DNA of 64,000 nt from Mantamonas sphyraenae STR306 (GCA_026936335.1 JAPMXV010000067.1:186001-250000); one strand, 5' to 3'. Shown: positions 2,065-12,925, counted from the stretch's first letter. Made by a program: numbers and translations. Notes: a model not told the origin generated them from the sequence alone.

Positions 2065-3078
2065 CTATCCCCATCGCTCCTTGGCCTCTGCGGCCGTCAT
2101 GATGGTGCATCGGTCGTCGTTTTGGGAGCACATGTCTTGGACGGTGCGCACAAACCGGTTGCCCAGGCGCAGGGCACCCTGTTTGGCATCGGAAGTGGGT
2201 TCAGGTTTGTTGGATTGGGTGGATTGGGTCTTGGAGGCGACGAGGGCGGTGGCGTAGGACATGGCGGCGTGCTGGAGGGCAGGAAACAAGACGAGGCCGC
2301 TCATCTCGACAAACTTGCCTGGGCTGACCTGGTACTGGGTGAGCACGTGCGAGTCGTCGATGGGTGCGTTGGGAACCACAAAGCAGGCGAGGTGGAGGTC
2401 GCCCGTGCTGGTTTCGCCGAGGACGACCTTGAAGAGGTGGGTGGGCACGGCGACGTGGTTGGGCCCGATGGTGTCGTACTTGACCACCGACGTGTGATCC
2501 TTGGCAAACCGACGCTGTACAAGGGCCGCCTCGTTGCTCGCAGGGCCCACCTGGCTGGCACGGGCCTCGTCGAGAAAGAGGGGGCCGGAAAAGATGACCA
2601 CACGCTCGTAGATGCCTGTGAGCTTGCGTGCCCACAGCTCCATACGCATCCAGAAGCCCGAGTTGTTGTTGTACTCCTGTGGAACGATGTTTGTGAGGGC
2701 AAAGGTGTCGTCCATGGCACCCTGGGAGCGCTTGTTGTCTGCTGCCGGGTTCATGTGACCGCGTGACAAGCCCAGGGGCCACCCTGCCTTGTAGTCTGCG
2801 TTGGTGGACTGGAATTCGAGCGGCAGCCGTTCCTCCGCGTGGAAACGGCTTTGTTTGCGCGAGGCCTTGCCCTTGAGCATGTCGCGTGTGAGGAGTTCGG
2901 CGACCCAGATGGGGATGCGGCGGGCCTGATCGTAGCACAGCACGTGGTTGTCATACCCAATCACCACCTGGTTGCTGGGGATGCCGTATTGCAGGATGTC
3001 GCCATGGCGTGAGGGCGTGTTGGAGTCGGCGCGGGCGTCCACGAGGGGACGGACAAACATGGGTGTGGAGGAGGACAT
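2065..3078 (-). CDS. DNA/RNA non-specific endonuclease (endonuclease G/Nuc1 family)
   Basis: YDQARRIPIWVAE, SRGHMNPAAD (DRGH-like), TFALTNIVPQ, NSGFW..ME, SGPLF, VAVPTHLFKV. Start placed at ATG 3078. Confidence 0.9.
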   Translation of the reverse strand: MSSSTPMFVRPLVDARADSNTPSRHGDILQYGIPSNQVVIGYDNHVLCYDQARRIPIWVAELLTRDMLKGKASRKQSRFHAEERLPLEFQSTNADYKAGWPLGLSRGHMNPAADNKRSQGAMDDTFALTNIVPQEYNNNSGFWMRMELWARKLTGIYERVVIFSGPLFLDEARASQVGPASNEAALVQRRFAKDHTSVVKYDTIGPNHVAVPTHLFKVVLGETSTGDLHLACFVVPNAPIDDSHVLTQYQVSPGKFVEMSGLVLFPALQHAAMSYATALVASKTQSTQSNKPEPTSDAKQGALRLGNRFVRTVQDMCSQNDDRCTIMTAAEAKERWG

Positions 3079-3184
3079 GGTGTGGTGTTGGAGACGACGG
3101 GGCGCATGGGTTTGGGGCGAGGAAACGATCGGTCCATTTGAGAATGTACAAAGAGGGGAATGCATTGGGTGAGGGGAGGATTGA

Positions 3185-3510
3185 TCACGATTCCTCGTCT
3201 GCTTGGGAGTCAAGGGGCGCGCCAGAGACAAGGGCATCGACGTTGTTCATCACCTGGCCCGTACCACGGGCCAGGGAGACTACGCGTGCATTGTGTGCAA
3301 CAAGAGAGGCAGAGTGGTGGGACAGGGTCTGCAGTTCTGCGTTGAGCGTCTGTTGTTTGTGGGAGTGGGCAAGGAGAGTGGGGGCCGGGGAGATGAGCGC
3401 GGGATTTTGGCGCGGGAACGGGCTTGGAACGAACGGACCTGCATGTTGTCCACAAGCTGCTGGTACTGCGCCTCTGTGTCTGCCGAGAGGGACGTGGCAG
3501 AGCCGGACAT
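3185..3510 (-). CDS. 78-aa spliced coiled-coil micro-protein, possible DASH/Dam1 small subunit (Hsk3/Dad3-like)
   Basis: Exons 3439-3510 and 3185-3349 with a phase-0 GTCCGT..CAG intron. Product: MSGSATSLSADTEAQYQQLVDNMQTLNAELQTLSHHSASLVAHNARVVSLARGTGQVMNNVDALVSG... Family call is by resemblance only. Confidence 0.5.
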
Positions 3511-3593
3511 GGGTGGCGCGGAGTGAGTGTGGGTTGTTGTGGTTGGGTGCGCAGGGGCGGCCAGCGAGAGAGTGGAGCTGGAGCTGAGCGACG

Positions 3594-4465
3594 ATGTCGA
3601 CGAAGCTGGGCGGGTCGGTTGTTCTTGGGGACAAGAGGACGACGGCGTCGAAGCAGGAGTCGCTGATGCACAACGAGGCGCTGAGGATGGCAAAACACAT
3701 ACGGGACATGGTGGAGGTGGCGACGCGGCTGTACTCGAGGGCACGGAAGACGGAGGAGGAGGAGGAGCGGGAAGAGTTGAGCGGAGAGCTGGAGGAGCTG
3801 CAGAAGCAGGTGCGGAAGGCAGTGGAAGTATTTTATGTGTTGAAAGTGAGGCAGAGGGCGTGGCATACGATTCGCATGCAAGGGGTGGAGCAACACAGAG
3901 CGAGGAGGCAGACGCAGGGGTGTGGCCGGAAGACGTGTCGGAACGGTACAAGGCAGAAGTGGAGGAGGCCAAAGAGGCGATGAGTGTGGAGTGGGTGGAG
4001 GAAAACGAGCTGGACAATGCCAGTGCGCGTGTGGAAGCCATGCTGGAAGAGCTGACGCAAGGAGACGGGTTGCCAGTGCGTCCGAACGCGTGTGCGCTGA
4101 CGGGAGAGCCGCTGACGGATCCTGTGACCACGTAGGTTGGGAGAGGGGGAGGCAGGGAGAGAGAGAGATGGAGGCAGGGGGGGCTGACATTGTTGTTGGG
4201 GGGCGGTGGGGTGCGGTGCAGTGGCGTGTGCCAGCACGTGTTTAACGCCGAGGCGATCAACGAACTGCTGCAAAGCGAAGGGCGGATTGTGCCCGGGACG
4301 GGGGGAGCCCGAGGAATCATGTGTCCCGTGGAGGACTGCAATGAGTTTATTCTGCAGTCGAAGCTGGGTTTGGATGCAGAGACGGTGGAGATGCTGGCGG
4401 AGGAGCTGTTGAAACAGGAGATGGAGGCGCTGAAGGCGTCAGGGGCCATGGAGACCGAAGAATGA
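3594..4465 (+). CDS. NSMCE2: SMC5/6 SUMO ligase Nse2/Mms21-like (SP-RING)
   Basis: Exons 3594-3845, 3899-4131 and 4222-4465 join in frame via GT-AG introns. N-terminal coiled coil plus CALTGEPLTDPV..CQHVF...CPVEDC SP-RING. Confidence 0.75.
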
Positions 4466-4579
4466 AAAGCATGGGGTTGGATGGATCAGAGGAGAGTGGG
4501 TGGGTGCGTGGGTGCGGCGGTTTGGTGTTGGGTGCTGTGTATGCATGCGAGGGCGGCACCAGCAAAAACACAATAGAAA

Positions 4580-5695
4580 ATGGTGAGCGGCTGCGAGGAC
4601 GGCGACGTGTGGGGAGGCATTGTGGAAGTGGGTGTGTGGGAAACTGACACACATTTGGGTTGGGTTGGGATGTATGTGCAGGTTGCCCGTTTGAGCAAGA
4701 ACCGCAAGAAGCGAGGACACGTGAGCGCTGGTCACGGTCGTGTCGGTGAGTTGGAGGGTCGGGGTGGATTGCGCGAGGGAGAGGGTTTGGACGGGGCTGC
4801 AGGACGGAGGATAGGTGGAAATGGGAGGAATGGGCGGTGGATGGGTGGATGGGGTTGGTGGAAGGATGGTGAAGGGTGGAGGGTGGTGCAGAGTGGGTGC
4901 AGGGAGGCATGGGCGGGGAAGATGGCTGGCCGGCGCGGGTTTGCATGCGAGGGGCAGCCGGGAACGGGCCGCCTGGACGACGCAAGGGAGACCGGACGGG
5001 GATGGGGAGCGTGGGAACGGGTGCATGGATGGTGTGTGCATGGGGAGAGATGGAAGAGAGGGGAGTGGGGTGGCACGGAAGGAGCAGGAGGAGGGGAATT
5101 GTGGCTGGGCGGGTGGGAAAAATGCGGCTTTGGCAAAGGATGAAGGCAGCCCTGCGGTGGAGGATAGAGAAGAGGTGGAGGAAGAGGGAAAGGGAGAGAG
5201 GGGAAGGGGGGAATGGGGAATGATGGAGTGGGTGTGTGCAGACAGCTGACACAGAGAATGGGGAACATGGACGGCGGTGACGTGTGTGTGTGTGTGTGCA
5301 TTGAACCCACAGGCAAGCACCGAAAGCATCCGGGTGGACGCGGTAACGCGGGTGGCCTGACGCACCACCGTACCCTGTTTGATCGTTACCATCCGGGTTA
5401 CTTTGGTAAGGTCGGCATGCGCTACTTCCACAAGACGCAGCAGAAGTTCTACCGCCCGGCGCTGAACGTGGACAAGCTGTGGACGCTGGTGAGCGAGGAG
5501 ACGCGCACCAAGTACGCTGGAGCCAAGACTGGGGACAAGGTGCCTGTGATTGACATCACCAAGGCTGGCTTCTACAAGCTGCTGGGCAAGGGAGTGCTGC
5601 CGAAGCAGCCGGTGATTGTGAAGGCCAAGTTCTTTTCTGCCGAGGCCGAGCGCAAGATCAAGAAGGTGGGCGGTGCTTGCGTGCTGACTGCTTAA
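4580..5695 (+). CDS. RPL27A: 60S ribosomal protein L27a (uL15)
   Basis: Exons 4580-4582 (ATG only), 4682-4745 and 5313-5695. [31 protein letters not shown]...[14 protein letters not shown]...GGACVLTA. Confidence 0.97.
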
Positions 5696-5948
5696 ATGAA
5701 CCATTGTTGGCTTAGTGCGGGAGAGCATGGGGTGGGGGGGGGGGGTTCTTGTGATGGGGAGCGTGTGAAGGGTGTTTTGAGGAGATTGGAGATTGTGCGG
5801 AATGGTGGGGGGTTGGGGGAGATTGGAATGGGTGGGGGTGTGTGGGGAGGGGTTGGAATTGGGAGAAGGGAAGGGAGTGTGAGAGAGATGCTGGGAAAGG
5901 AGCGGATGGGGTGCAGGGAGAGTGAAGGTGGGGGGGGGGAGGCGAGGT

Positions 5949-8900
5949 TCATTGCGGGTTCGAAAGCATCTGAGTGCAATTCTGAATGCCCATCAAGATA
6001 GCAAACACAAGCTCAGGCTCTACCTGCGTCGTTTGGAGGATCACTCTTGCTTGCTCATACAGCTCCAGTGCCCGAAGGAAGTCACCTTTGGATTCGTACA
6101 CATCAGCGATGTTGTTGATGGTCTTGGCCACATCTGGGTGCTCATCCCCACCATGCACCCGTCGCATGATCGCCAGTCCCTGCGTCAAAAGCTCCAGTGC
6201 CCGGTCGGACTCTCCCTTGGATTCGTACACCCCAGCCACGTTGTTGATGCTCTTGGCCACATCCGGGTGCTCATCGCCACCATACACCCGTCGCCTGATC
6301 TCCAGTACCTGCTCAAACAGCTCCAGTGCCGGATCGTACTCTTTCTTGTTGATGTACACCACAGCCATGTTGTTCATGCTCGTGGCCACATCCGGGTGCT
6401 CATCCCCACCATGCAGCCGTCGTGTGATCGCCTGTGCCTGCTCATACAGCTCCAGTGCACGATCACACTTTCCCTTGGCATTGTACACCCTAGCGATGTT
6501 GTTGATGCTCTTGGCCACATCCGGGTGCTCATCCCCACCATGCAGCCGTCGTGTGATCTTCAGTGCCTGCTCATGCAGCTTCAGTGCTCGATCGTACTCT
6601 GCCTTTTCATAGAACACAAACGCCACGTTGTGGATGCACGTGGCCACATCCGGGTGCTTGTTCCCACCATGCACCCGTTGCATGATCTCCAGTGCCTGCT
6701 CACACAGCACCAGTGCCGGATCGTACAGCATCATGGCTTTGTACACATTAGCCATCATGTTGATGCACGTGGCCACATCCGGGTGCTCATCCCCACCATG
6801 CACCCGTCGCAGGATCTCCAGTGCTTGCTCACACAGCTCCAGTGCCCGATCGTACTCTCCCTTGGCTTTGTACAGCAAAGCCATCTTCTTGATGCTCGCG
6901 GCCACACTCGGGTGCTCATCCCCACCATGCACCCGTCGCCTGATCGCAAGTACCTGCTCATACAGCTCCAGTGCCCGATCCAACTCTCCCTTGGCATTGT
7001 ACACCCTAGCCATGTTGTTCAAACTTCTTCCCCATCCCTCATTCTCCTCCCCATCCATGCCGGTCCTCTGCTGCACCTCCATCACCTCCACCAGCACCCT
7101 CTCCGCCTCTTCATATGCTCCCATCCATTCATGCACCGCTGCCACATTCTGCCCAACCCAGCAGACCTCTTCCACCTCACCTGAAGCTTGGCACGCTGCT
7201 TGACACACCCTCCACACCCGCTCCCCATGCATCAGCATCTCCCTGTGCCACACCAGCTCTTCCAATGGCTCACTTGCATCAAAGGCAAACTCCTTCCGCA
7301 ACATCTTCAACACACGCCTCCACGCCGCTATTCCCCCCTCTGCCTCCACCTGCAGCTCCTCCCCTCCCCGTGTCATCATCTGCACCAGTCCATGCACTTG
7401 CCATCCATCCCCATCCACAGCCCGTTGCACCAGCGACACACGCTCCAGCGATTCCATCGCCTTCTCTGCCCGCATGTCTGCCTCATCCCTGTGCCCCACG
7501 CCCTCCATCAGCGTCGCTATCACCCTCTCCTGCACCTCTCCCCCATTCAGCAGTGCCAGACACTGCATCAGTCCCACTGCATCCTTGTTCTTCTGCCCAG
7601 CAGCGTCCATCGCCATCTTCCACACTGCCATCGCCGTCATGTCGTACACATCTGACTCAATTCCATCCTCCATATCCTCTACAGTCGCCTTGAGTCCCTC
7701 TCTGAAGTCGCTCACAGGCGTTTCGTCATCTTCTGCCCCAATCACAGCTGCTGCTTGACGCACTTCCAGCGCCATCCCTCCCAGAAGCTCCTTCAGCTCC
7801 CCATACGCCTTCACCTCCTCCTTTTCATCCGCTCCATCTACCACCACCACCCCTTCACTGGCAAACACTGCATCCACCTCCTCATCCTCCATGATCCCCA
7901 CTCGCACCACTTTGTCCACCGCCCCCGTGTCCCAAATCCCATCCTTCCACGTCGTCACCACCACCGTCCCTCCCTCCTGCAGCACAGGTTTCACATCGCC
8001 CCACTCCTCCACTCCATCCACAACCATCACCCACCGTCGTCCCTTCAGCGCAAGCATGGTCCGCCGTGCCATCCCTTCCCGCACCTCCTCCTTGTCCGCC
8101 TTCTCCACCTTTTCATCCGTGGTCATACCCAATGCCACTCCCAGCTGCAGCACATCACTCATCAACTCCTCCCTGCTCTGCCCACGCACCCACCACACCA
8201 CCTCCGCCGCCCGTTCCTCCTTTACCTTCCACGCATACATCTGTGCCACACTTGTCTTGCCCATGCCCCGTGCCCCATGCATCACTACCACCCCTTCTTC
8301 ACCCCACACCTCCTTCATGACCCCATTCCTCTCCACCAGCTCTCTTTTCTTCTTCAGATTGTCCACCTGCTTTGCCCATCCCGCCTCTGCCTCCTTTGCA
8401 CTCCTCCCTCTCCCATTCACCAGCCTCTCCTTCTCCCACCCCTCCCATGTCACCAACACTGCCTTGTTCCCCTCCCTGTCCCCTCCTGCCTTCTGGGCTT
8501 CCCCAAACGCCGTCTCCACGCTCTCTCCCGCTCCCAATGCCTCATAGAACGCCCCTGCCATCCGCACAGCTGCCCCATCCAGCACCTTCTCCCTGTATCC
8601 AATCACCACAGGCACATACTCACCCACCCTCTTTGCCATCTCCTCGCTCTCACACCCGTTCAGAAACACCAGCACGGGCCTTGCCTCCCACACCGCATCC
8701 ACAAGCGTCTGCCGCATCACATCCCCATCCACAGCCTCCACATACTCCTTTCCCATGTGCGCGGCAATATGCACCATGTGCTTTCCTTCCTCACGCACCA
8801 GCCGCAAGACTTCCGCCTGCTGTGTGGCCACTTGCCCCAAAACATCCATCGGTCTCCCTCGACATGCCCCTTCAATCACCCGCAGCTCCTCCACAGATCC

Positions 8901-9123
8901 CAGTGTCCCTTCTCCCATCATTCCCCAGCACCAGCACCCTCACATCCCTCATTCCGCCCTCCTCCCACCAGTGATCACCAAACTTCCCTCTTTCCTTCAT
9001 GCTCCCCTCGTTTCCCCGCCCATCCCTCCTTCCGGACGACGACGATGACTCACCCGTGTGCGTCTCTTCCTCCCTCCCCACTTCCCCAACTTCCACAGCC
9101 TCATCGTTCTCTCGTTTCTCCAT
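5949..9123 (-). CDS. NLR-like STAND protein: CHAT (caspase-like) + NB-ARC + about 8 TPR repeats
   Basis: CHAT motifs VHIAAHMG and LVFLNGCES, then V(I)GY..V.D.AA.....FY.AL..G..V..AF..A. Walker A GARGMGKT, Walker B WVMVVDGVE, VVVTTW, LGGMALEV, WQVHGLVQ. 43-aa HPDVA..INN.A.VY repeats. Main ORF is 5949-8921; the N-terminus (ATG 9123, ...VRVLVLGND) is joined by a frameshift near 8915. Confidence 0.88.
6040..7040 (-). repeat. Tandem 129-bp TPR-coding repeats (about 8 units)
   Basis: The motif ggccacatccgggtgctcatc recurs on + at about 129-bp spacing (near 6127, 6256, 6385, 6514, 6643, 6772, 6900). Confidence 0.95.
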
Positions 9124-9215
9124 TTGTTTGTTTTTGACGTGGGCTGACCTGCGCAGCTGCGCAGCGCTCCTTCCAAACCAAACCTCACCTGCGCTCCTTC
9201 CACAAACAAGAACCA
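9124..9215. promoter_or_regulatory. Putative bidirectional promoter between the NLR and ankyrin genes
   Basis: 92-bp gap between divergent ATGs. Contains the perfect 16-bp palindrome ctgcgcagctgcgcag (9149-9164) and the direct repeat gcgctccttcca (9164 and 9191). Confidence 0.45.
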
Positions 9216-10034
9216 ATGACCACCAACACAGCCCACACTCCCCTTTCACACTCGGACATGCACTGGCTGATCGAGTCAGCACGCGCAGGCGACGAGGCCT
9301 CTCTCTCGTCACTTGCCACCCTCCACGCAAGCAACATCAACACGGGCAACGTCATGGGCATAACCCCCCTCATGGCTGCTGTCACGTGCGGCCGCATCGA
9401 CCTCGTGAAATCCCTCCTTGCAGCAGGCGCCGACGTCAACCAACGCGACGCAAACAACATGTCGGCCCTCGCCCTAGGTGCCCTGGATGGGAACGAGGAC
9501 ATCGTCGAGATCCTTGTCGCTGCAGGTGCACAATCCAACCCAACCATGGACAACGGTGACTCTCTGATCGCCGTTGCGGCGAGCCTGGGCCAGCTCGAAG
9601 TCCTGCGTGCTTGTTTGCGTCTCGGAGTCGACCCGAACACGTGCGACAACAGCGGCATGCCTCTCATCGTTCATGCGACAAGCGTTGGCCTGGAGGAGTT
9701 GATGCAATTGCTCATTGAGGCCGGGGCCGACGTCAACGCCACAGGCGAAGCGGGAACTTCTGCCCTTGTCCTCGCTTCCATGATCGGCGACGTGGACAGT
9801 GTGCAGCAACTGCTCGATGCTGGTGCAGACATCCACCTGGTCACCTGTGATTCCAAGTGTGCCTTGTCCACGGCCGCCTTTTGGGGGAACATCGAGATTG
9901 TCGAGCTCCTATGGGCTGCAGGCGCCGACATCAACGTTTCAACTGACCCCCAGCTCACCTCCATCCTTGCTGCCGCCGAGGAAATCCAACCAATCGAGCA
10001 GATGCTTCGTAGGACGGGCCGGTGGGCCGAGTGA
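9216..10034 (+). CDS. Ankyrin-repeat protein (about 6-7 repeats), intronless
   Basis: GITPLMAAV..GRIDLVKSLLAAGADVN, LLIEAGADVN, LLDAGADIH, LLWAAGADIN. Confidence 0.92.
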   Translation: MTTNTAHTPLSHSDMHWLIESARAGDEASLSSLATLHASNINTGNVMGITPLMAAVTCGRIDLVKSLLAAGADVNQRDANNMSALALGALDGNEDIVEILVAAGAQSNPTMDNGDSLIAVAASLGQLEVLRACLRLGVDPNTCDNSGMPLIVHATSVGLEELMQLLIEAGADVNATGEAGTSALVLASMIGDVDSVQQLLDAGADIHLVTCDSKCALSTAAFWGNIEIVELLWAAGADINVSTDPQLTSILAAAEEIQPIEQMLRRTGRWAE

Positions 10035-10226
10035 TCGCTTTCCTCCTGACCTCTCCAATTTCATTCGCCTCGGGAAAGCGTCCCAACAATATCCACATAC
10101 ATATCACTCCGCCTCGTACAGCGTCGTTCATAAATGCAGTACGTTTCCAGCGCGTCTCTCTCTCTCCTGCGGTCGCGTTTGCGCTCTGCCCATCTCTCTC
10201 CCCTCCCTCCCCTTTCCCCCGCCCTC

Positions 10227-10436
10227 TCACAACTGCTCGCCACGAATCCTTCGTGCAAGCTGGACATCGCGTGGCATGATGGTCACTCTTCGCGCGTGAA
10301 TGGCGCCCAAATCTGTGTCCTCCATGGCTTGAACGAGCCGCAGCTCCCTTTCCGCCTCCTCTTCAACACCCACGCTCATCCCGTCCCGTTCCTGCCCGTC
10401 TTCACGCTCATTTCCCTGGCGTCTGCTCTCGCTCAT
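10227..10436 (-). pseudogene. Histone H3 C-terminal fragment (69-aa micro-ORF or truncated pseudogene)
   Basis: [36 protein letters not shown] matches H3 [36 protein letters not shown]. No H3 tail or alpha1 is visible upstream. Confidence 0.8.
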
Positions 10437-11306
10437 CCTAGAACCTTGTTTTGCATCCACCGGCGCGCAACCAAAAAAAAGAGAAGTCGATCGTAGCCAC
10501 CATTTTGCTTTTGCAGACGTTGGTACTCCCACAGACGTTCTACGAAACGATCGCATCGCCATATCTCAAAGCTCGAGGCTTAACGCGAAGAGGTTTGAAA
10601 GGGGCATGATCATGTCATCGAACATGTGTCCTAGAGAGAAACCAACAAAAGTTCAGGCAAACAGGCCTTGTCCCGGGGAGGACGAGGCCAAACGCAATCC
10701 GTAGAGTTGAGGAGAGTTCGCCCACGGAAGGCCGCAGACGTAACACAATTCAACACTTACAGACCAAATCACAAGGGCTTCAAACCAGTGGCAGGTAAGC
10801 TCATGCTGGGATGGAAGCCCAAAGTGGCCGACACCACACGGTGGAGCCCGGGAACAACCTCCTTAACAGAGGGCCACAGTCAACTCACCGCAAACAGAGT
10901 CGAAATCAAAACAGCACAAAAGCACAAATTGGTAACTACGACCGCTCGCAGAGGTGTGTTGGATCCCTTTTTCAAGCGCCGGAGCGTGTCCGCAGGAGAT
11001 CCGGATCGCAACCCAGTCCGCGCACCAACCCTGTCTACAGCCGCGGACACAGCCCCAGACTCCTGTCACACCACGGTACGCATAAATGCGCACGCTCCCG
11101 GTCCTTAGAACTCACCCGTGGACTGCTCTGTTCACGTAGCGCCTCACCGGGCCCGAGCAAACCTTGCGCGCTCCAAGCCCATCCATCCACACGTGCACAC
11201 ACTCATCCCACACACACACCCACAGAGGTCTCCACCCCACAAACAACGCACCACAGTTTCGTTCAGCCCCGGCCCACCCACACCAACGCGAAATCCGCCA
11301 GGGGTC

Positions 11307-12925
11307 ATGGCACTCGTCACGAAAAACTCGGTCAAGAAGGGCATGCTGACCACGGCCGAGGTCTCTGTCCACCACCCGGGGTACAAACGCTTCATGTCCA
11401 ACAACTTTGGCCGCAAGCACATGGAGAAAATGGGCTGGGAGAGGTACGTCCGGGCGCCTTTCGAGCATGCACCTCCACGTCCGCAGCCCCACACGCCCGC
11501 CCTCGCCGTCTCCTGGGCCCTTGGCCCACAGAAAAGCCCGTAGCCATCCCACGCCACTCACTGACACGCCCGTTTGCCCCGCTTGGCACCCACAGTGGCC
11601 AGGGACTCGGCCGCAGGAAGGACGGACGCCGCGAGCACGTCAAAGTCAAGCTGCGCAGTGGCAACCTGGGCGTAGGTTTGCCCTCTGCGAGCAGACAGCA
11701 CTTCCTCCGCGTCCCACGTCACTCACGCCACCCACGCACTCATTCACACACGGGCGCAGATCGGCGCCGAGAAGCAAACCGAAAACTTCCAGGACATCTG
11801 GTGGGATCACATGTACGCGGTGGCGTCCAACTCGCTGGGGAACGAAGAGAAGGACACGGGGGCGTCGGAGAGTGCCAGTGACTCGGATAGCAGCAGCAGC
11901 GACTCGGACGGCGAAGAGGACGTGTTCCGCAACCGCGTGCTGCAGTTTACACGCCAAGAGGGCCGTGGCGGCAAAAACCGTATCAATGTGAACGACCCCA
12001 AGAGCATGCTCTACTCGCGCTTTGTGCGTCCCTCCTCTCCCAGTGCCGCGTTCAACCCCGACGCTTTGCTGAACAGCACCAGCACCAGCACCAGCACCAG
12101 CACCAGCACCCAGCCAAAGGGACCGCTCAACCAGGCCGAGGCGGACAAGAGCAAAGAGGAGCGCGCAGGGACGTTGTCCACCACGCCACGGGTGCGTGTA
12201 AAGAGCGTGGAGGGCGATTCGGACACGTCGGACTCGGATTCGGATTCAGACACAGGCGCCGATAGCCTCGTGTATGCGGATGGGATGAAGCTGGAGGGCC
12301 ACGCAAAGGAATTGGGCCATTTCAAAGCCACAGGGGGACGCACACTGAAAAAGTACAGCCAGCGGGGTAAGATGGCAAGGTTGTTGGCAGCGGAGGAGGC
12401 GTTCAAGGCCTCGCAGGACGTGTATGGGTTCAGCGAGGTGATGCAGAGCAAGGCAGAGGTGCGCAAAGTGACTGTGGTGCGCAGCAAGGGACGCAGTGCC
12501 AAGCTGGAGCCCCTCGTGGACGACAAGGCCGCACGCAGGAAAGCCAGGCAGGCGCGACGGGAAGCCAAGGCACAGCGCAAGCTGGAGAAGAAGGAAGCCA
12601 AAAAGCACGCAAGGAAGCCAAGAAGCAAGCCAAGAAGGAGGCCAAGAAGGAGGCCAAGCGCAAGCGCAAGCGAGAGACGCAGCCGGACGATGAGGTTGAG
12701 GAGGACGACGACGACGAATGTTCACGAACGAAGCGACGCCGCAAGGAACCGGAGGCCGACACCGACGACAACGCAAGCAGTAGCCATGGGGCAAGCAGCA
12801 GCAGCAGCAGCAGCAGCAAGAAGAAGAAGAAGAAGAAGAAGGAGCGCAAGGCAAGCAAGGAGGAAAAGAAGCTGAAGAAGAAGGAGCGGAAGAAGAAGCA
12901 GAAGGCGAAGAAGAACAAAGAGTGA
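11307..12925 (+). CDS. G-patch domain protein (GPATCH4/PINX1-like), Lys-rich C-terminus
   Basis: Exons 11307-11443, 11596-11671 and 11760-12925. NFGRKHMEKMGWESGQGLGR..G....VKV...G.G and WWDHMY. One A appears to be missing at about 12600. Confidence 0.8.

Follow-up and report, generated by a model that had tools for sequence, protein, structure and literature searches.

A probable self-contained receptor-protease with CHAT, NB-ARC and TPR parts in Mantamonas sphyraenae, and the family to which it belongs

In the Apaf-1/caspase-9 apoptosome and the NLRC4/caspase-1 inflammasome, an oligomerising STAND nucleoside triphosphatase (NTPase) activates a clan-CD cysteine protease by proximity. The protease is recruited via CARD domains, and the repeats of the receptor are of the WD40 or LRR type. 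The SAVED-CHAT protease of the Haliangium type III-B CRISPR system (structure 8TL0) is likewise switched on by sensor-driven oligomerisation, with a cyclic tri-AMP-binding SAVED domain as the sensor. The gene for its substrate, PCaspase, lies in the vicinity, and mutation of the protease's H375/C422 dyad abolishes activity. CHAT is among the effector domains previously reported for fungal NOD-like receptors (NLRs), where NOD stands for the nucleotide-binding oligomerisation domain. In fungi, CHAT proteases that are linked to TPR, ankyrin or WD40 repeats, some of them in NLR architecture, cut gasdermins whose genes lie adjacent (PMC8851545, PMC12881547). Here we analyse a CHAT-NB-ARC-TPR gene on the minus strand of a 64,000-nucleotide stretch of DNA (the window) from Mantamonas sphyraenae STR306 (GCA_026936335.1 JAPMXV010000067.1:186001-250000), part of contig C67 of an assembly of 25 Mb in 78 contigs with a GC content of ~0.6. 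The three-part design as such is already known from bacteria and fungi. To our knowledge, genome surveys have revealed CHAT-type NLRs in multicellular bacteria and in fungi, and no study of one exists for a unicellular eukaryote other than a fungus. We think it probable that this gene is a single self-contained member of a lineage-specific, 13-member NLR-like STAND family, in which a CHAT protease, an NB-ARC switch and a TPR sensor are joined in one protein.

With one extra base at 8913 ignored, the gene has 1000 codons. As assembled, it is an open reading frame (ORF) of 990 amino acids at 5949-8921, minus strand, with its start at 8921. Its parts, with residue numbers below referring to the 990-residue ORF unless stated otherwise, are the following.

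5949-8952, minus strand: the CHAT-NB-ARC-TPR (NLR-like) gene, from the ORF, its translation, and the start and frame conserved in paralogs
8442-8952, minus strand: short CHAT (caspase-like) domain of ~170 residues at the extreme N terminus, from Pfam, profile search, PDB, AlphaFold2 (AF2) and Foldseek
8757-8759, minus strand: codon of the predicted catalytic His (His55; His65 of intact paralogs), invariant in 12 family sequences
8652-8654, minus strand: codon of the predicted catalytic Cys (Cys90; Cys100 of intact paralogs), invariant in 12 family sequences
7242-8324, minus strand: NB-ARC-type NTPase and helical/winged-helix part, from Pfam, NCBIfam and family-invariant motifs
8250-8276, minus strand: P-loop, residues 216-224 (GxxGxGKT/S), invariant in the family
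6042-7124, minus strand: about eight TPR units of 43 residues (129 bp), TPR_10/TPR_12 type, from Pfam TPR_12 (E 2e-105) and the 129-bp register

The original prediction, made from the window alone, had read this gene as a tripartite CHAT-NB-ARC-TPR protein, and domains and motifs do appear in that order. With the N-terminal 200 residues as query, Pfam CHAT (PF12770) scores 24.6 bits against a cut-off of 24, a borderline match that covers only profile positions 223-265. A profile of 185 positions made from 12 family sequences and run against 1.84 billion representative proteins finds 9204 proteins at E <= 0.001 and 530 at E <= 1e-10, the best at 9.4e-32. The 20 top matches that we scanned are all short-CHAT proteins. 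Pfam CHAT recognises 19 of them, at positions ~100-265, and the family profile alone recognises the remaining one, the bacterial protein P0075. Since the top matches cover just this range, the first 100 positions of the Pfam model are not part of the compact version of the domain. The gene for the best profile match is one of three CHAT genes on a bacterial contig that looks like an operon.

An alignment of 77 sequences, compared with the PDB, matches one solved structure, the SAVED-CHAT filament 8TL0 (E 5.8e-40); among solved structures, this is the protease domain's best relative. The AF2 model built from this alignment has a pLDDT of 88.3 and a pTM of 0.88; it supersedes a poor first model made from 12 paralogs only (pLDDT 56). 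Foldseek with the better model returns 8TL0 first (TM 0.83), then CED-3, caspases 7, 8 and 9, legumain and MALT1, and the CHAT domain is thus predicted to have the caspase-hemoglobinase fold. The His motif (HIAAHMG, residues 51-57) and the Cys motif (FLNGCES, placed at residues 88-92), whose His and Cys had been proposed as retained catalytic residues, hold up: this His and this Cys are invariant in the family, and His65/Cys100 of the family align to His355/Cys402 of the 8TL0 chain, which are H375/C422 of SAVED-CHAT by a constant offset of 20. By analogy with these relatives, members of the receptor family would be active proteases.

The NTPase part scores 29.8-32.1 bits with Pfam NB-ARC (cut-off 23.5), the 29.8-bit match covering residues 207-359. 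NCBIfam FxSxx_TPR (NF040586) reaches 270.7 bits over residues 205-519, below its equivalog cut-off of 300, and still 115.7 bits on a piece of a paralog that holds no TPR at all; for the NB-ARC assignment, the NCBIfam match appears much the stronger of the two. The actinobacterial FxSxx-COOH TPR proteins, with the related TIR-NB-ARC-TPR proteins, are the best family match for the NOD and TPR part, and our receptor is related to the TPR proteins of that system without being one of them. It differs in the N-terminal effector, which is CHAT here and TIR or none in the FxSxx-related proteins. No FxSxx-type partner genes turned up, in work that included no search aimed at them. A word-indexed protein search with residues 1-560 gives five weak matches, to distant bacterial-type NB-ARC-TPR proteins only, and none to the query itself, as the collection does not contain the proteins of this genome. 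In both subfamilies described below, the Walker B Asp (near 8016), the GLPL-like motif and the MHD-like motif (VHG) do not vary. Placed by eye against the textbook motifs, the family has GGMAL for GLPL, VHG for MHD with its His kept, and at the place of sensor 1 TTW followed by K/R instead of TTR.

Eight strong TPR_12/TPR_10 stretches occupy residues ~620-965 (Pfam). In the close paralogs we collected 87 distinct units, and their variation is concentrated: positions 1, 4 and 23 have an entropy of 2.5-2.9 bits, positions 21, 34 and 37 a moderate one, and in the rest of the unit it is close to zero. Individual paralogs have between 4 and at least 56 units; the copy on contig C51 (133000-143219) has the largest array, in an open frame of 3478 residues with at least 56 tandem 43-residue units. 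An array that is hypervariable at a few positions and variable in number matches, as far as sequences tell, what has been described for NLR-type receptors whose repeats are highly similar, and the sensor logic of an NLR that had been suggested for this gene agrees with it.

The family has 13 copies in the genome. The CHAT end as query (200 residues) matches 12 other loci, seven at 79-85% and five at ~45% identity, and the NOD part as query recovers the same 13 loci; a count of paralogs was one of the checks proposed with the original prediction. They fall into a subfamily of eight (the window copy and its seven close relatives) and one of five. All intact copies of both subfamilies begin their frame with a conserved Met, and a hydrophobic strand comes next (M-R/S-D-V-R-V-L). 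Effector-NOD-repeat architecture, 13 paralogs and hypervariability concentrated in the repeats are what characterises NLR-type receptors, and all three are found here. Some copies have peculiarities of their own or of their group. The paralog at C67:112859 (locus L015) has an insertion of ~46 residues between CHAT and NB-ARC (~7400-7540 of that locus), with a hydrophobic stretch that resembles a membrane helix. The subfamily-2 copy on C77 (80117 onward) has a frame break near residue 251-266 and is likely a pseudogene. Each of the five copies of subfamily 2 is preceded by a conserved ORF of ~100 residues without a Pfam match, on the same strand and ~300 bp ahead of the start of CHAT. This ORF probably represents an additional N-terminal exon and is absent from subfamily 1. 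Its positions include the following.

L035:7494-7829, L037:7818-8156, L040:7604-7939 and L042:7680-8255, same strand as CHAT: subfamily-2 upstream ORF, no Pfam match

The closest relatives in overall design are bacterial. P0075 (GCA_046328715.1, 857 residues) has the same order of short CHAT, NB-ARC and TPR and is colinear with the window protein over 912 columns, at 23% identity (E 4e-18). Among the top matches of the CHAT profile are also CHAT-NB-ARC-WD40 and CHAT-NACHT-HEAT proteins of multicellular bacteria, with the short CHAT at the extreme N terminus. All these bacterial proteins are uncharacterised. The family here differs from them in that it is eukaryotic, has 13 copies, and is built with near-identical 43-residue TPR units hypervariable at three positions. 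With similarity over the full length, the idea that eukaryotic death machinery came from bacteria can be tested in a simple system. Compared with SAVED-CHAT, the protein has an NTPase and TPRs in place of the SAVED sensor, and the protist family has no conserved neighbour to correspond to the PCaspase gene near SAVED-CHAT. Compared with apoptosome and inflammasome, the protease is fused to the receptor and not recruited, and the repeats are TPRs; the protein is in effect an apoptosome and its caspase in a single chain. The fungal NLRs and HET-Q2-like CHAT proteases are likewise eukaryotic and NLR-like, with protease effectors and highly similar variable repeats (PMC8851545, PMC12881547). The fungal proteases are typically clustered with the gene of the gasdermin that they cleave, whereas a Pfam search, which could miss distant gasdermins, finds none in the protist genome. 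The two hosts are also apart, the nearest named relatives of the protist's RPL27A being non-fungal.

These relatives suggest how such a protein might work. The TPR array, with its few hypervariable positions as recognition surface, would bind a non-self or danger ligand. Binding would release the NB-ARC switch, and the protein would oligomerise. The CHAT domains, crowded together, would become active, as in SAVED-CHAT filaments or for caspase-9 on the apoptosome, and the active protease would cleave substrates, with cell death or arrest as the probable outcome. The same parts could serve a function outside immunity, the family being then a STAND-TPR regulator of the AfsR/MalT type or a developmental cell-death switch, with the protease used in housekeeping signalling. 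The family nearest to the NOD-TPR part is indeed one of actinobacterial STAND-TPR proteins whose function is unproven, and bacterial NLR-related proteins are reported to include transcription regulators (10.64898/2026.09.02.748808). The Pfam scan of the receptor protein finds no DNA-binding domain, however, and expansion, variation in repeat number and hypervariability concentrated in near-identical repeats are hallmarks of the fungal and bacterial NLR-type receptors, so we take a non-immune function to be distinctly unlikely. An expanded, expressed family with variable TPR sensors in a small genome suggests that protists use all-in-one sensor-protease receptors.

The 5' end of the window copy raises the question of whether the gene is intact.

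8913, minus strand: single additional base, absent from each of the seven close paralogs, from DNA alignment

Because of the extra base, the 990-residue ORF is out of frame with the conserved start codon (8952-8950) and with the first CHAT beta strand, and from the conserved start the assembled frame ends after 26 codons. Taken as real and fixed, the insertion would make the window copy a dead pseudogene, and any product that starts from a downstream ATG would lack the first core strand. That the base stands in the assembly and in none of the seven close paralogs fits such a history, as does the fact that a second member of the family, the C77 copy, is broken too. Yet the remaining 2970 nt stay open, amid other frames of the same strand that are full of stops. 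Further evidence comes from Logan contigs of three sequencing runs, X1 and X2, which are DNA-like, and X3, which is RNA-like. X1 and X2 contain only the form without base 8913, at a depth of 84-90 against 37-48 for neighbouring single-copy sequence, and no contig of either run has the extra base. The doubled depth fits two loci that share the form without the base. In all three runs, single bases of the window at 10842 and 10860 are missing as well, which points to indel errors of the assembly or to a strain with variants of its own. We consider it fairly likely that base 8913 is an assembly error or a strain-private variant.

Run X3 behaves as RNA, because it holds GT..AG joints on the plus strand (10791>10877, 10951>11039 and 11074>11225) in the transcript of a neighbouring gene. 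In X3, a contig of 205 nt with a depth of ~29 is identical to the receptor copy at 7235-7439, where every paralog has at least 20 mismatches. The window copy is transcribed. With a transcribed copy, a long open frame, no contig with the extra base in X1 or X2 and hints of indel errors in the assembly, a dead pseudogene is unlikely.

The original prediction had gone further than the receptor, to a three-gene innate-immune module within an intronless cluster. The neighbourhood is as follows.

8953-9111, minus strand: 5' flank common to all close paralogs (leader and/or core promoter), from blastn against the seven paralog loci
9216-10034, plus strand: intronless ankyrin-repeat gene of 272 residues, Pfam Ank_2 E 4e-32
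10230-10346, minus strand: isolated histone H3 C-terminal segment, in an ORF at 10227-10562, from the Pfam Histone profile (positions 89-122 only) and tblastn with the genome's own H3
4670-5695, plus strand: RPL27A, two exons with an intron at ~4746-5311, Pfam Ribosomal_L27A E 8e-16, convergent with the receptor gene
10236-11400, plus strand: spliced transcript into a G-patch gene, exons ~10236-10791, 10877-10951, 11039-11074 and 11225 onward

In the proposed module, receptor-protease, head-to-head ankyrin gene (as substrate, inhibitor or guardee) and H3 piece (as decoy) would form one co-regulated unit. There are facts in its favour. An ankyrin gene stands head-to-head with three of the 13 copies, by way of two different ankyrin genes; two ORFs elsewhere in the genome, on C3 and C21, apparently hold a CHAT-like match together with ankyrin repeats; the H3 piece shows constraint at the codon level; and fungal CHAT proteases cleave the products of adjacent genes (PMC8851545). 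The extent of the duplicated unit speaks against it. What is shared between the copies is the gene and ~160 bp upstream, and homology ends at 9095-9111, ~105 bp before the ankyrin start codon. On their upstream side, the other five close copies have genes for an EamA/TPT transporter, an SNF2-HIRAN-RING helicase, an rRNA adenine dimethylase and a BEACH-WD40 protein, and in one case an unassigned ORF. With tblastn over all fetched flanks, an ankyrin gene is found beside the window copy and beside two tandem copies at 111-123 kb of C67, and beside none of the 10 copies outside C67 within the flanks read. An adjacent gene that encodes the substrate, of the gasdermin/CHAT or Craspase/Csx30 type, should be a neighbour conserved across the family, and the neighbours at those 10 copies are unrelated. 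Ankyrin repeats are in any case very common in this genome (>180 matches). We know of no eukaryotic operon-like immune module of this kind outside fungi, and in a eukaryotic genome rich in repeats, the neighbourhood of a gene says little in favour of a module.

The three ankyrin-linked copies are moreover not independent, sharing an RPL27A fragment. The tandem units (L015/L016, C67:111300-122900) repeat with a period of 5415 bp. Each combines an ankyrin gene with a receptor paralog and has, downstream of the latter, an RPL27A fragment with exon 2 only, identical in protein (100%) to exon 2 in the window and lacking exon 1. The exon-2 copies indicate that the tandem units descend from an RPL27A-receptor segment like that of the window. 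Their ankyrin genes are 96.5% identical to each other and 34% identical to the window ankyrin in the best BLASTP alignment (32-34% across tblastn matches). The tandem-unit ankyrin is not the best match of the window ankyrin in the genome either. The two are different genes, and the adjacency thus arose at two junctions. The start codons are 263 bp apart in the window and ~415 bp in the tandem units. The spacing of 92 bp first given for the window has to be revised accordingly; it came about because an unconserved open frame runs on upstream. So the proposed recurrence of ankyrin or histone fragments beside paralogs reduces to a different ankyrin gene at two tandem copies on C67, with the H3 piece found, by tblastn with H3 over all fetched flanks, beside no paralog and only in the window; absence of recurring neighbours was the ground on which the original prediction itself was to be refuted.

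Run X3 also bears on a joint regulation of receptor and ankyrin. It has a perfect ankyrin contig at 9233-9555 with a depth of 2.7, far below the ~29 of the receptor contig; such depths are poor measures of expression, and nothing in the X3 contigs indicates the co-regulation that had been proposed. A complex prediction for the CHAT piece of the window (175 residues) with the ankyrin protein gave a score of 0.00, a 'no answer' that counts neither way. With no gasdermin detected in the genome either, we hold a three-gene module to be very unlikely. Highly improbable, in our judgement, is the variant in which the receptor-ankyrin pairs are true two-gene units, the ankyrin protein being substrate, inhibitor or guarded target, and in which the H3 micro-ORF mimics the four-helix-bundle interface of H3. 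Ankyrin gene and H3 piece are neighbours of the receptor without a demonstrable link to it.

The histone piece was correctly described as a micro-ORF with the C terminus of H3 only. At 10233-10346, it covers residues 98-135 of H3 as found elsewhere in this genome (74% identity), that is, the end of helix 2, loop 2 and helix 3, and it has neither the complete histone fold (helices N, 1, 2 and 3) nor the N-terminal tail. No convincing further H3 exon is found on the minus strand over ~1 kb, up to 11320. Four canonical H3 genes and one CenH3-like gene are present elsewhere in the genome. Over 30 codons, the piece differs from canonical H3 with proportions of 0.79 at synonymous sites (pS, nearly saturated) and 0.15 at non-synonymous sites (pN), which matches the comparison of canonical H3 with the CenH3-like gene (pS 0.85, pN 0.17). 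These values suggest a coding segment under long constraint or, alternatively, a fragment recently derived from an H3 gene that is foreign or has been lost; the piece looks unlike a decaying recent copy. The decoy role finds no support, and nothing ties the piece to the receptor. The piece also lies antisense under the first exon (from ~10236) of the plus-strand spliced transcript that leads into the G-patch gene, over which the contigs do not tell the strand of the RNA.

We return to the reading of the gene as a self-contained receptor-protease, which homology, fold and family behaviour support well and for which the mechanism set out above would follow from relatives. Several observations weigh against it. 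We infer ligand, oligomerisation, protease activity and substrates all from relatives. At the catalytic His, all 12 aligned family sequences have His-Met-Gly, where the consensus of 67 outside relatives, like SAVED-CHAT, has His-Gly; a Gly directly after the catalytic His is normal for CHAT proteins and caspases. The usual sensor-1 Arg of NB-ARC is a Trp in the family. A profile of the NOD matched no solved structure among the PDB sequences, and no sequence-level relationship of the protist NOD to solved NODs was detected. For the state of the window copy, 31-mers of the form without base 8913 also occur in one paralog, so that the X1/X2 contig could stem from that paralog alone; if the base is real, the window copy is without the first strand of the protease fold. 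Finally, a head-to-head ankyrin gene at three of 13 copies is more than we would expect by chance, which leaves a link with the neighbour some probability. A rough, post hoc estimate puts two ankyrin junctions among ~11 independent loci at about 1 in 100, on the assumption of at least 70 ankyrin ORFs among ~10,000 genes, with the three copies related and ankyrin genes clustering on C67.

The intronless cluster between RPL27A and GPATCH4 is thus correct in its flanks, RPL27A on one side and the G-patch gene on the other, and in the intronless ankyrin ORF; the flanking genes themselves are spliced. Both were matched exon by exon, with separate exons as queries. The exon piece at 11576-11701 reaches 28.1 bits with Pfam G-patch. 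The G-patch transcript, with its introns at 10792-10876, 10952-11038 and 11075-11224, accounts for a block at 10640-11160 that had seemed non-coding, and run X3 holds both spliced and unspliced forms of this transcript. The best relative of RPL27A is 79% identical, and its named best matches are scattered over chlorarachniophytes, animals, a jakobid and Corallochytrium. Introns, histones and RPL27A mark the host as a eukaryote, and a fungus is unlikely.

A few observations remain that touch the locus or the family from the side. PADLOC returns generic TPR and ankyrin models only. Outside the receptor family, the genome has seven more CHAT genes. The two ORFs with CHAT-like and ankyrin-repeat matches, C3:340631-344929 (minus strand, 1628 residues) and C21:17931-21083 (minus strand, 2005 residues), are possible CHAT-ankyrin fusion proteins. 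In the 5' flank of the receptor gene, a TGAGTCA site of the AP-1/Gcn4 type (~9050-9065, minus strand) is conserved in the window copy and the seven close paralogs, and a 16-bp palindrome lies in the non-conserved spacer at ~9147-9162. The coding strand of the receptor family is very G-rich and C-poor, with a GC skew of ~0.6 at 5949-8921 and in all close paralogs. This gives the window a sharp switch of skew near 5.9 kb, the plus strand at 3000-5900 being G-rich too.

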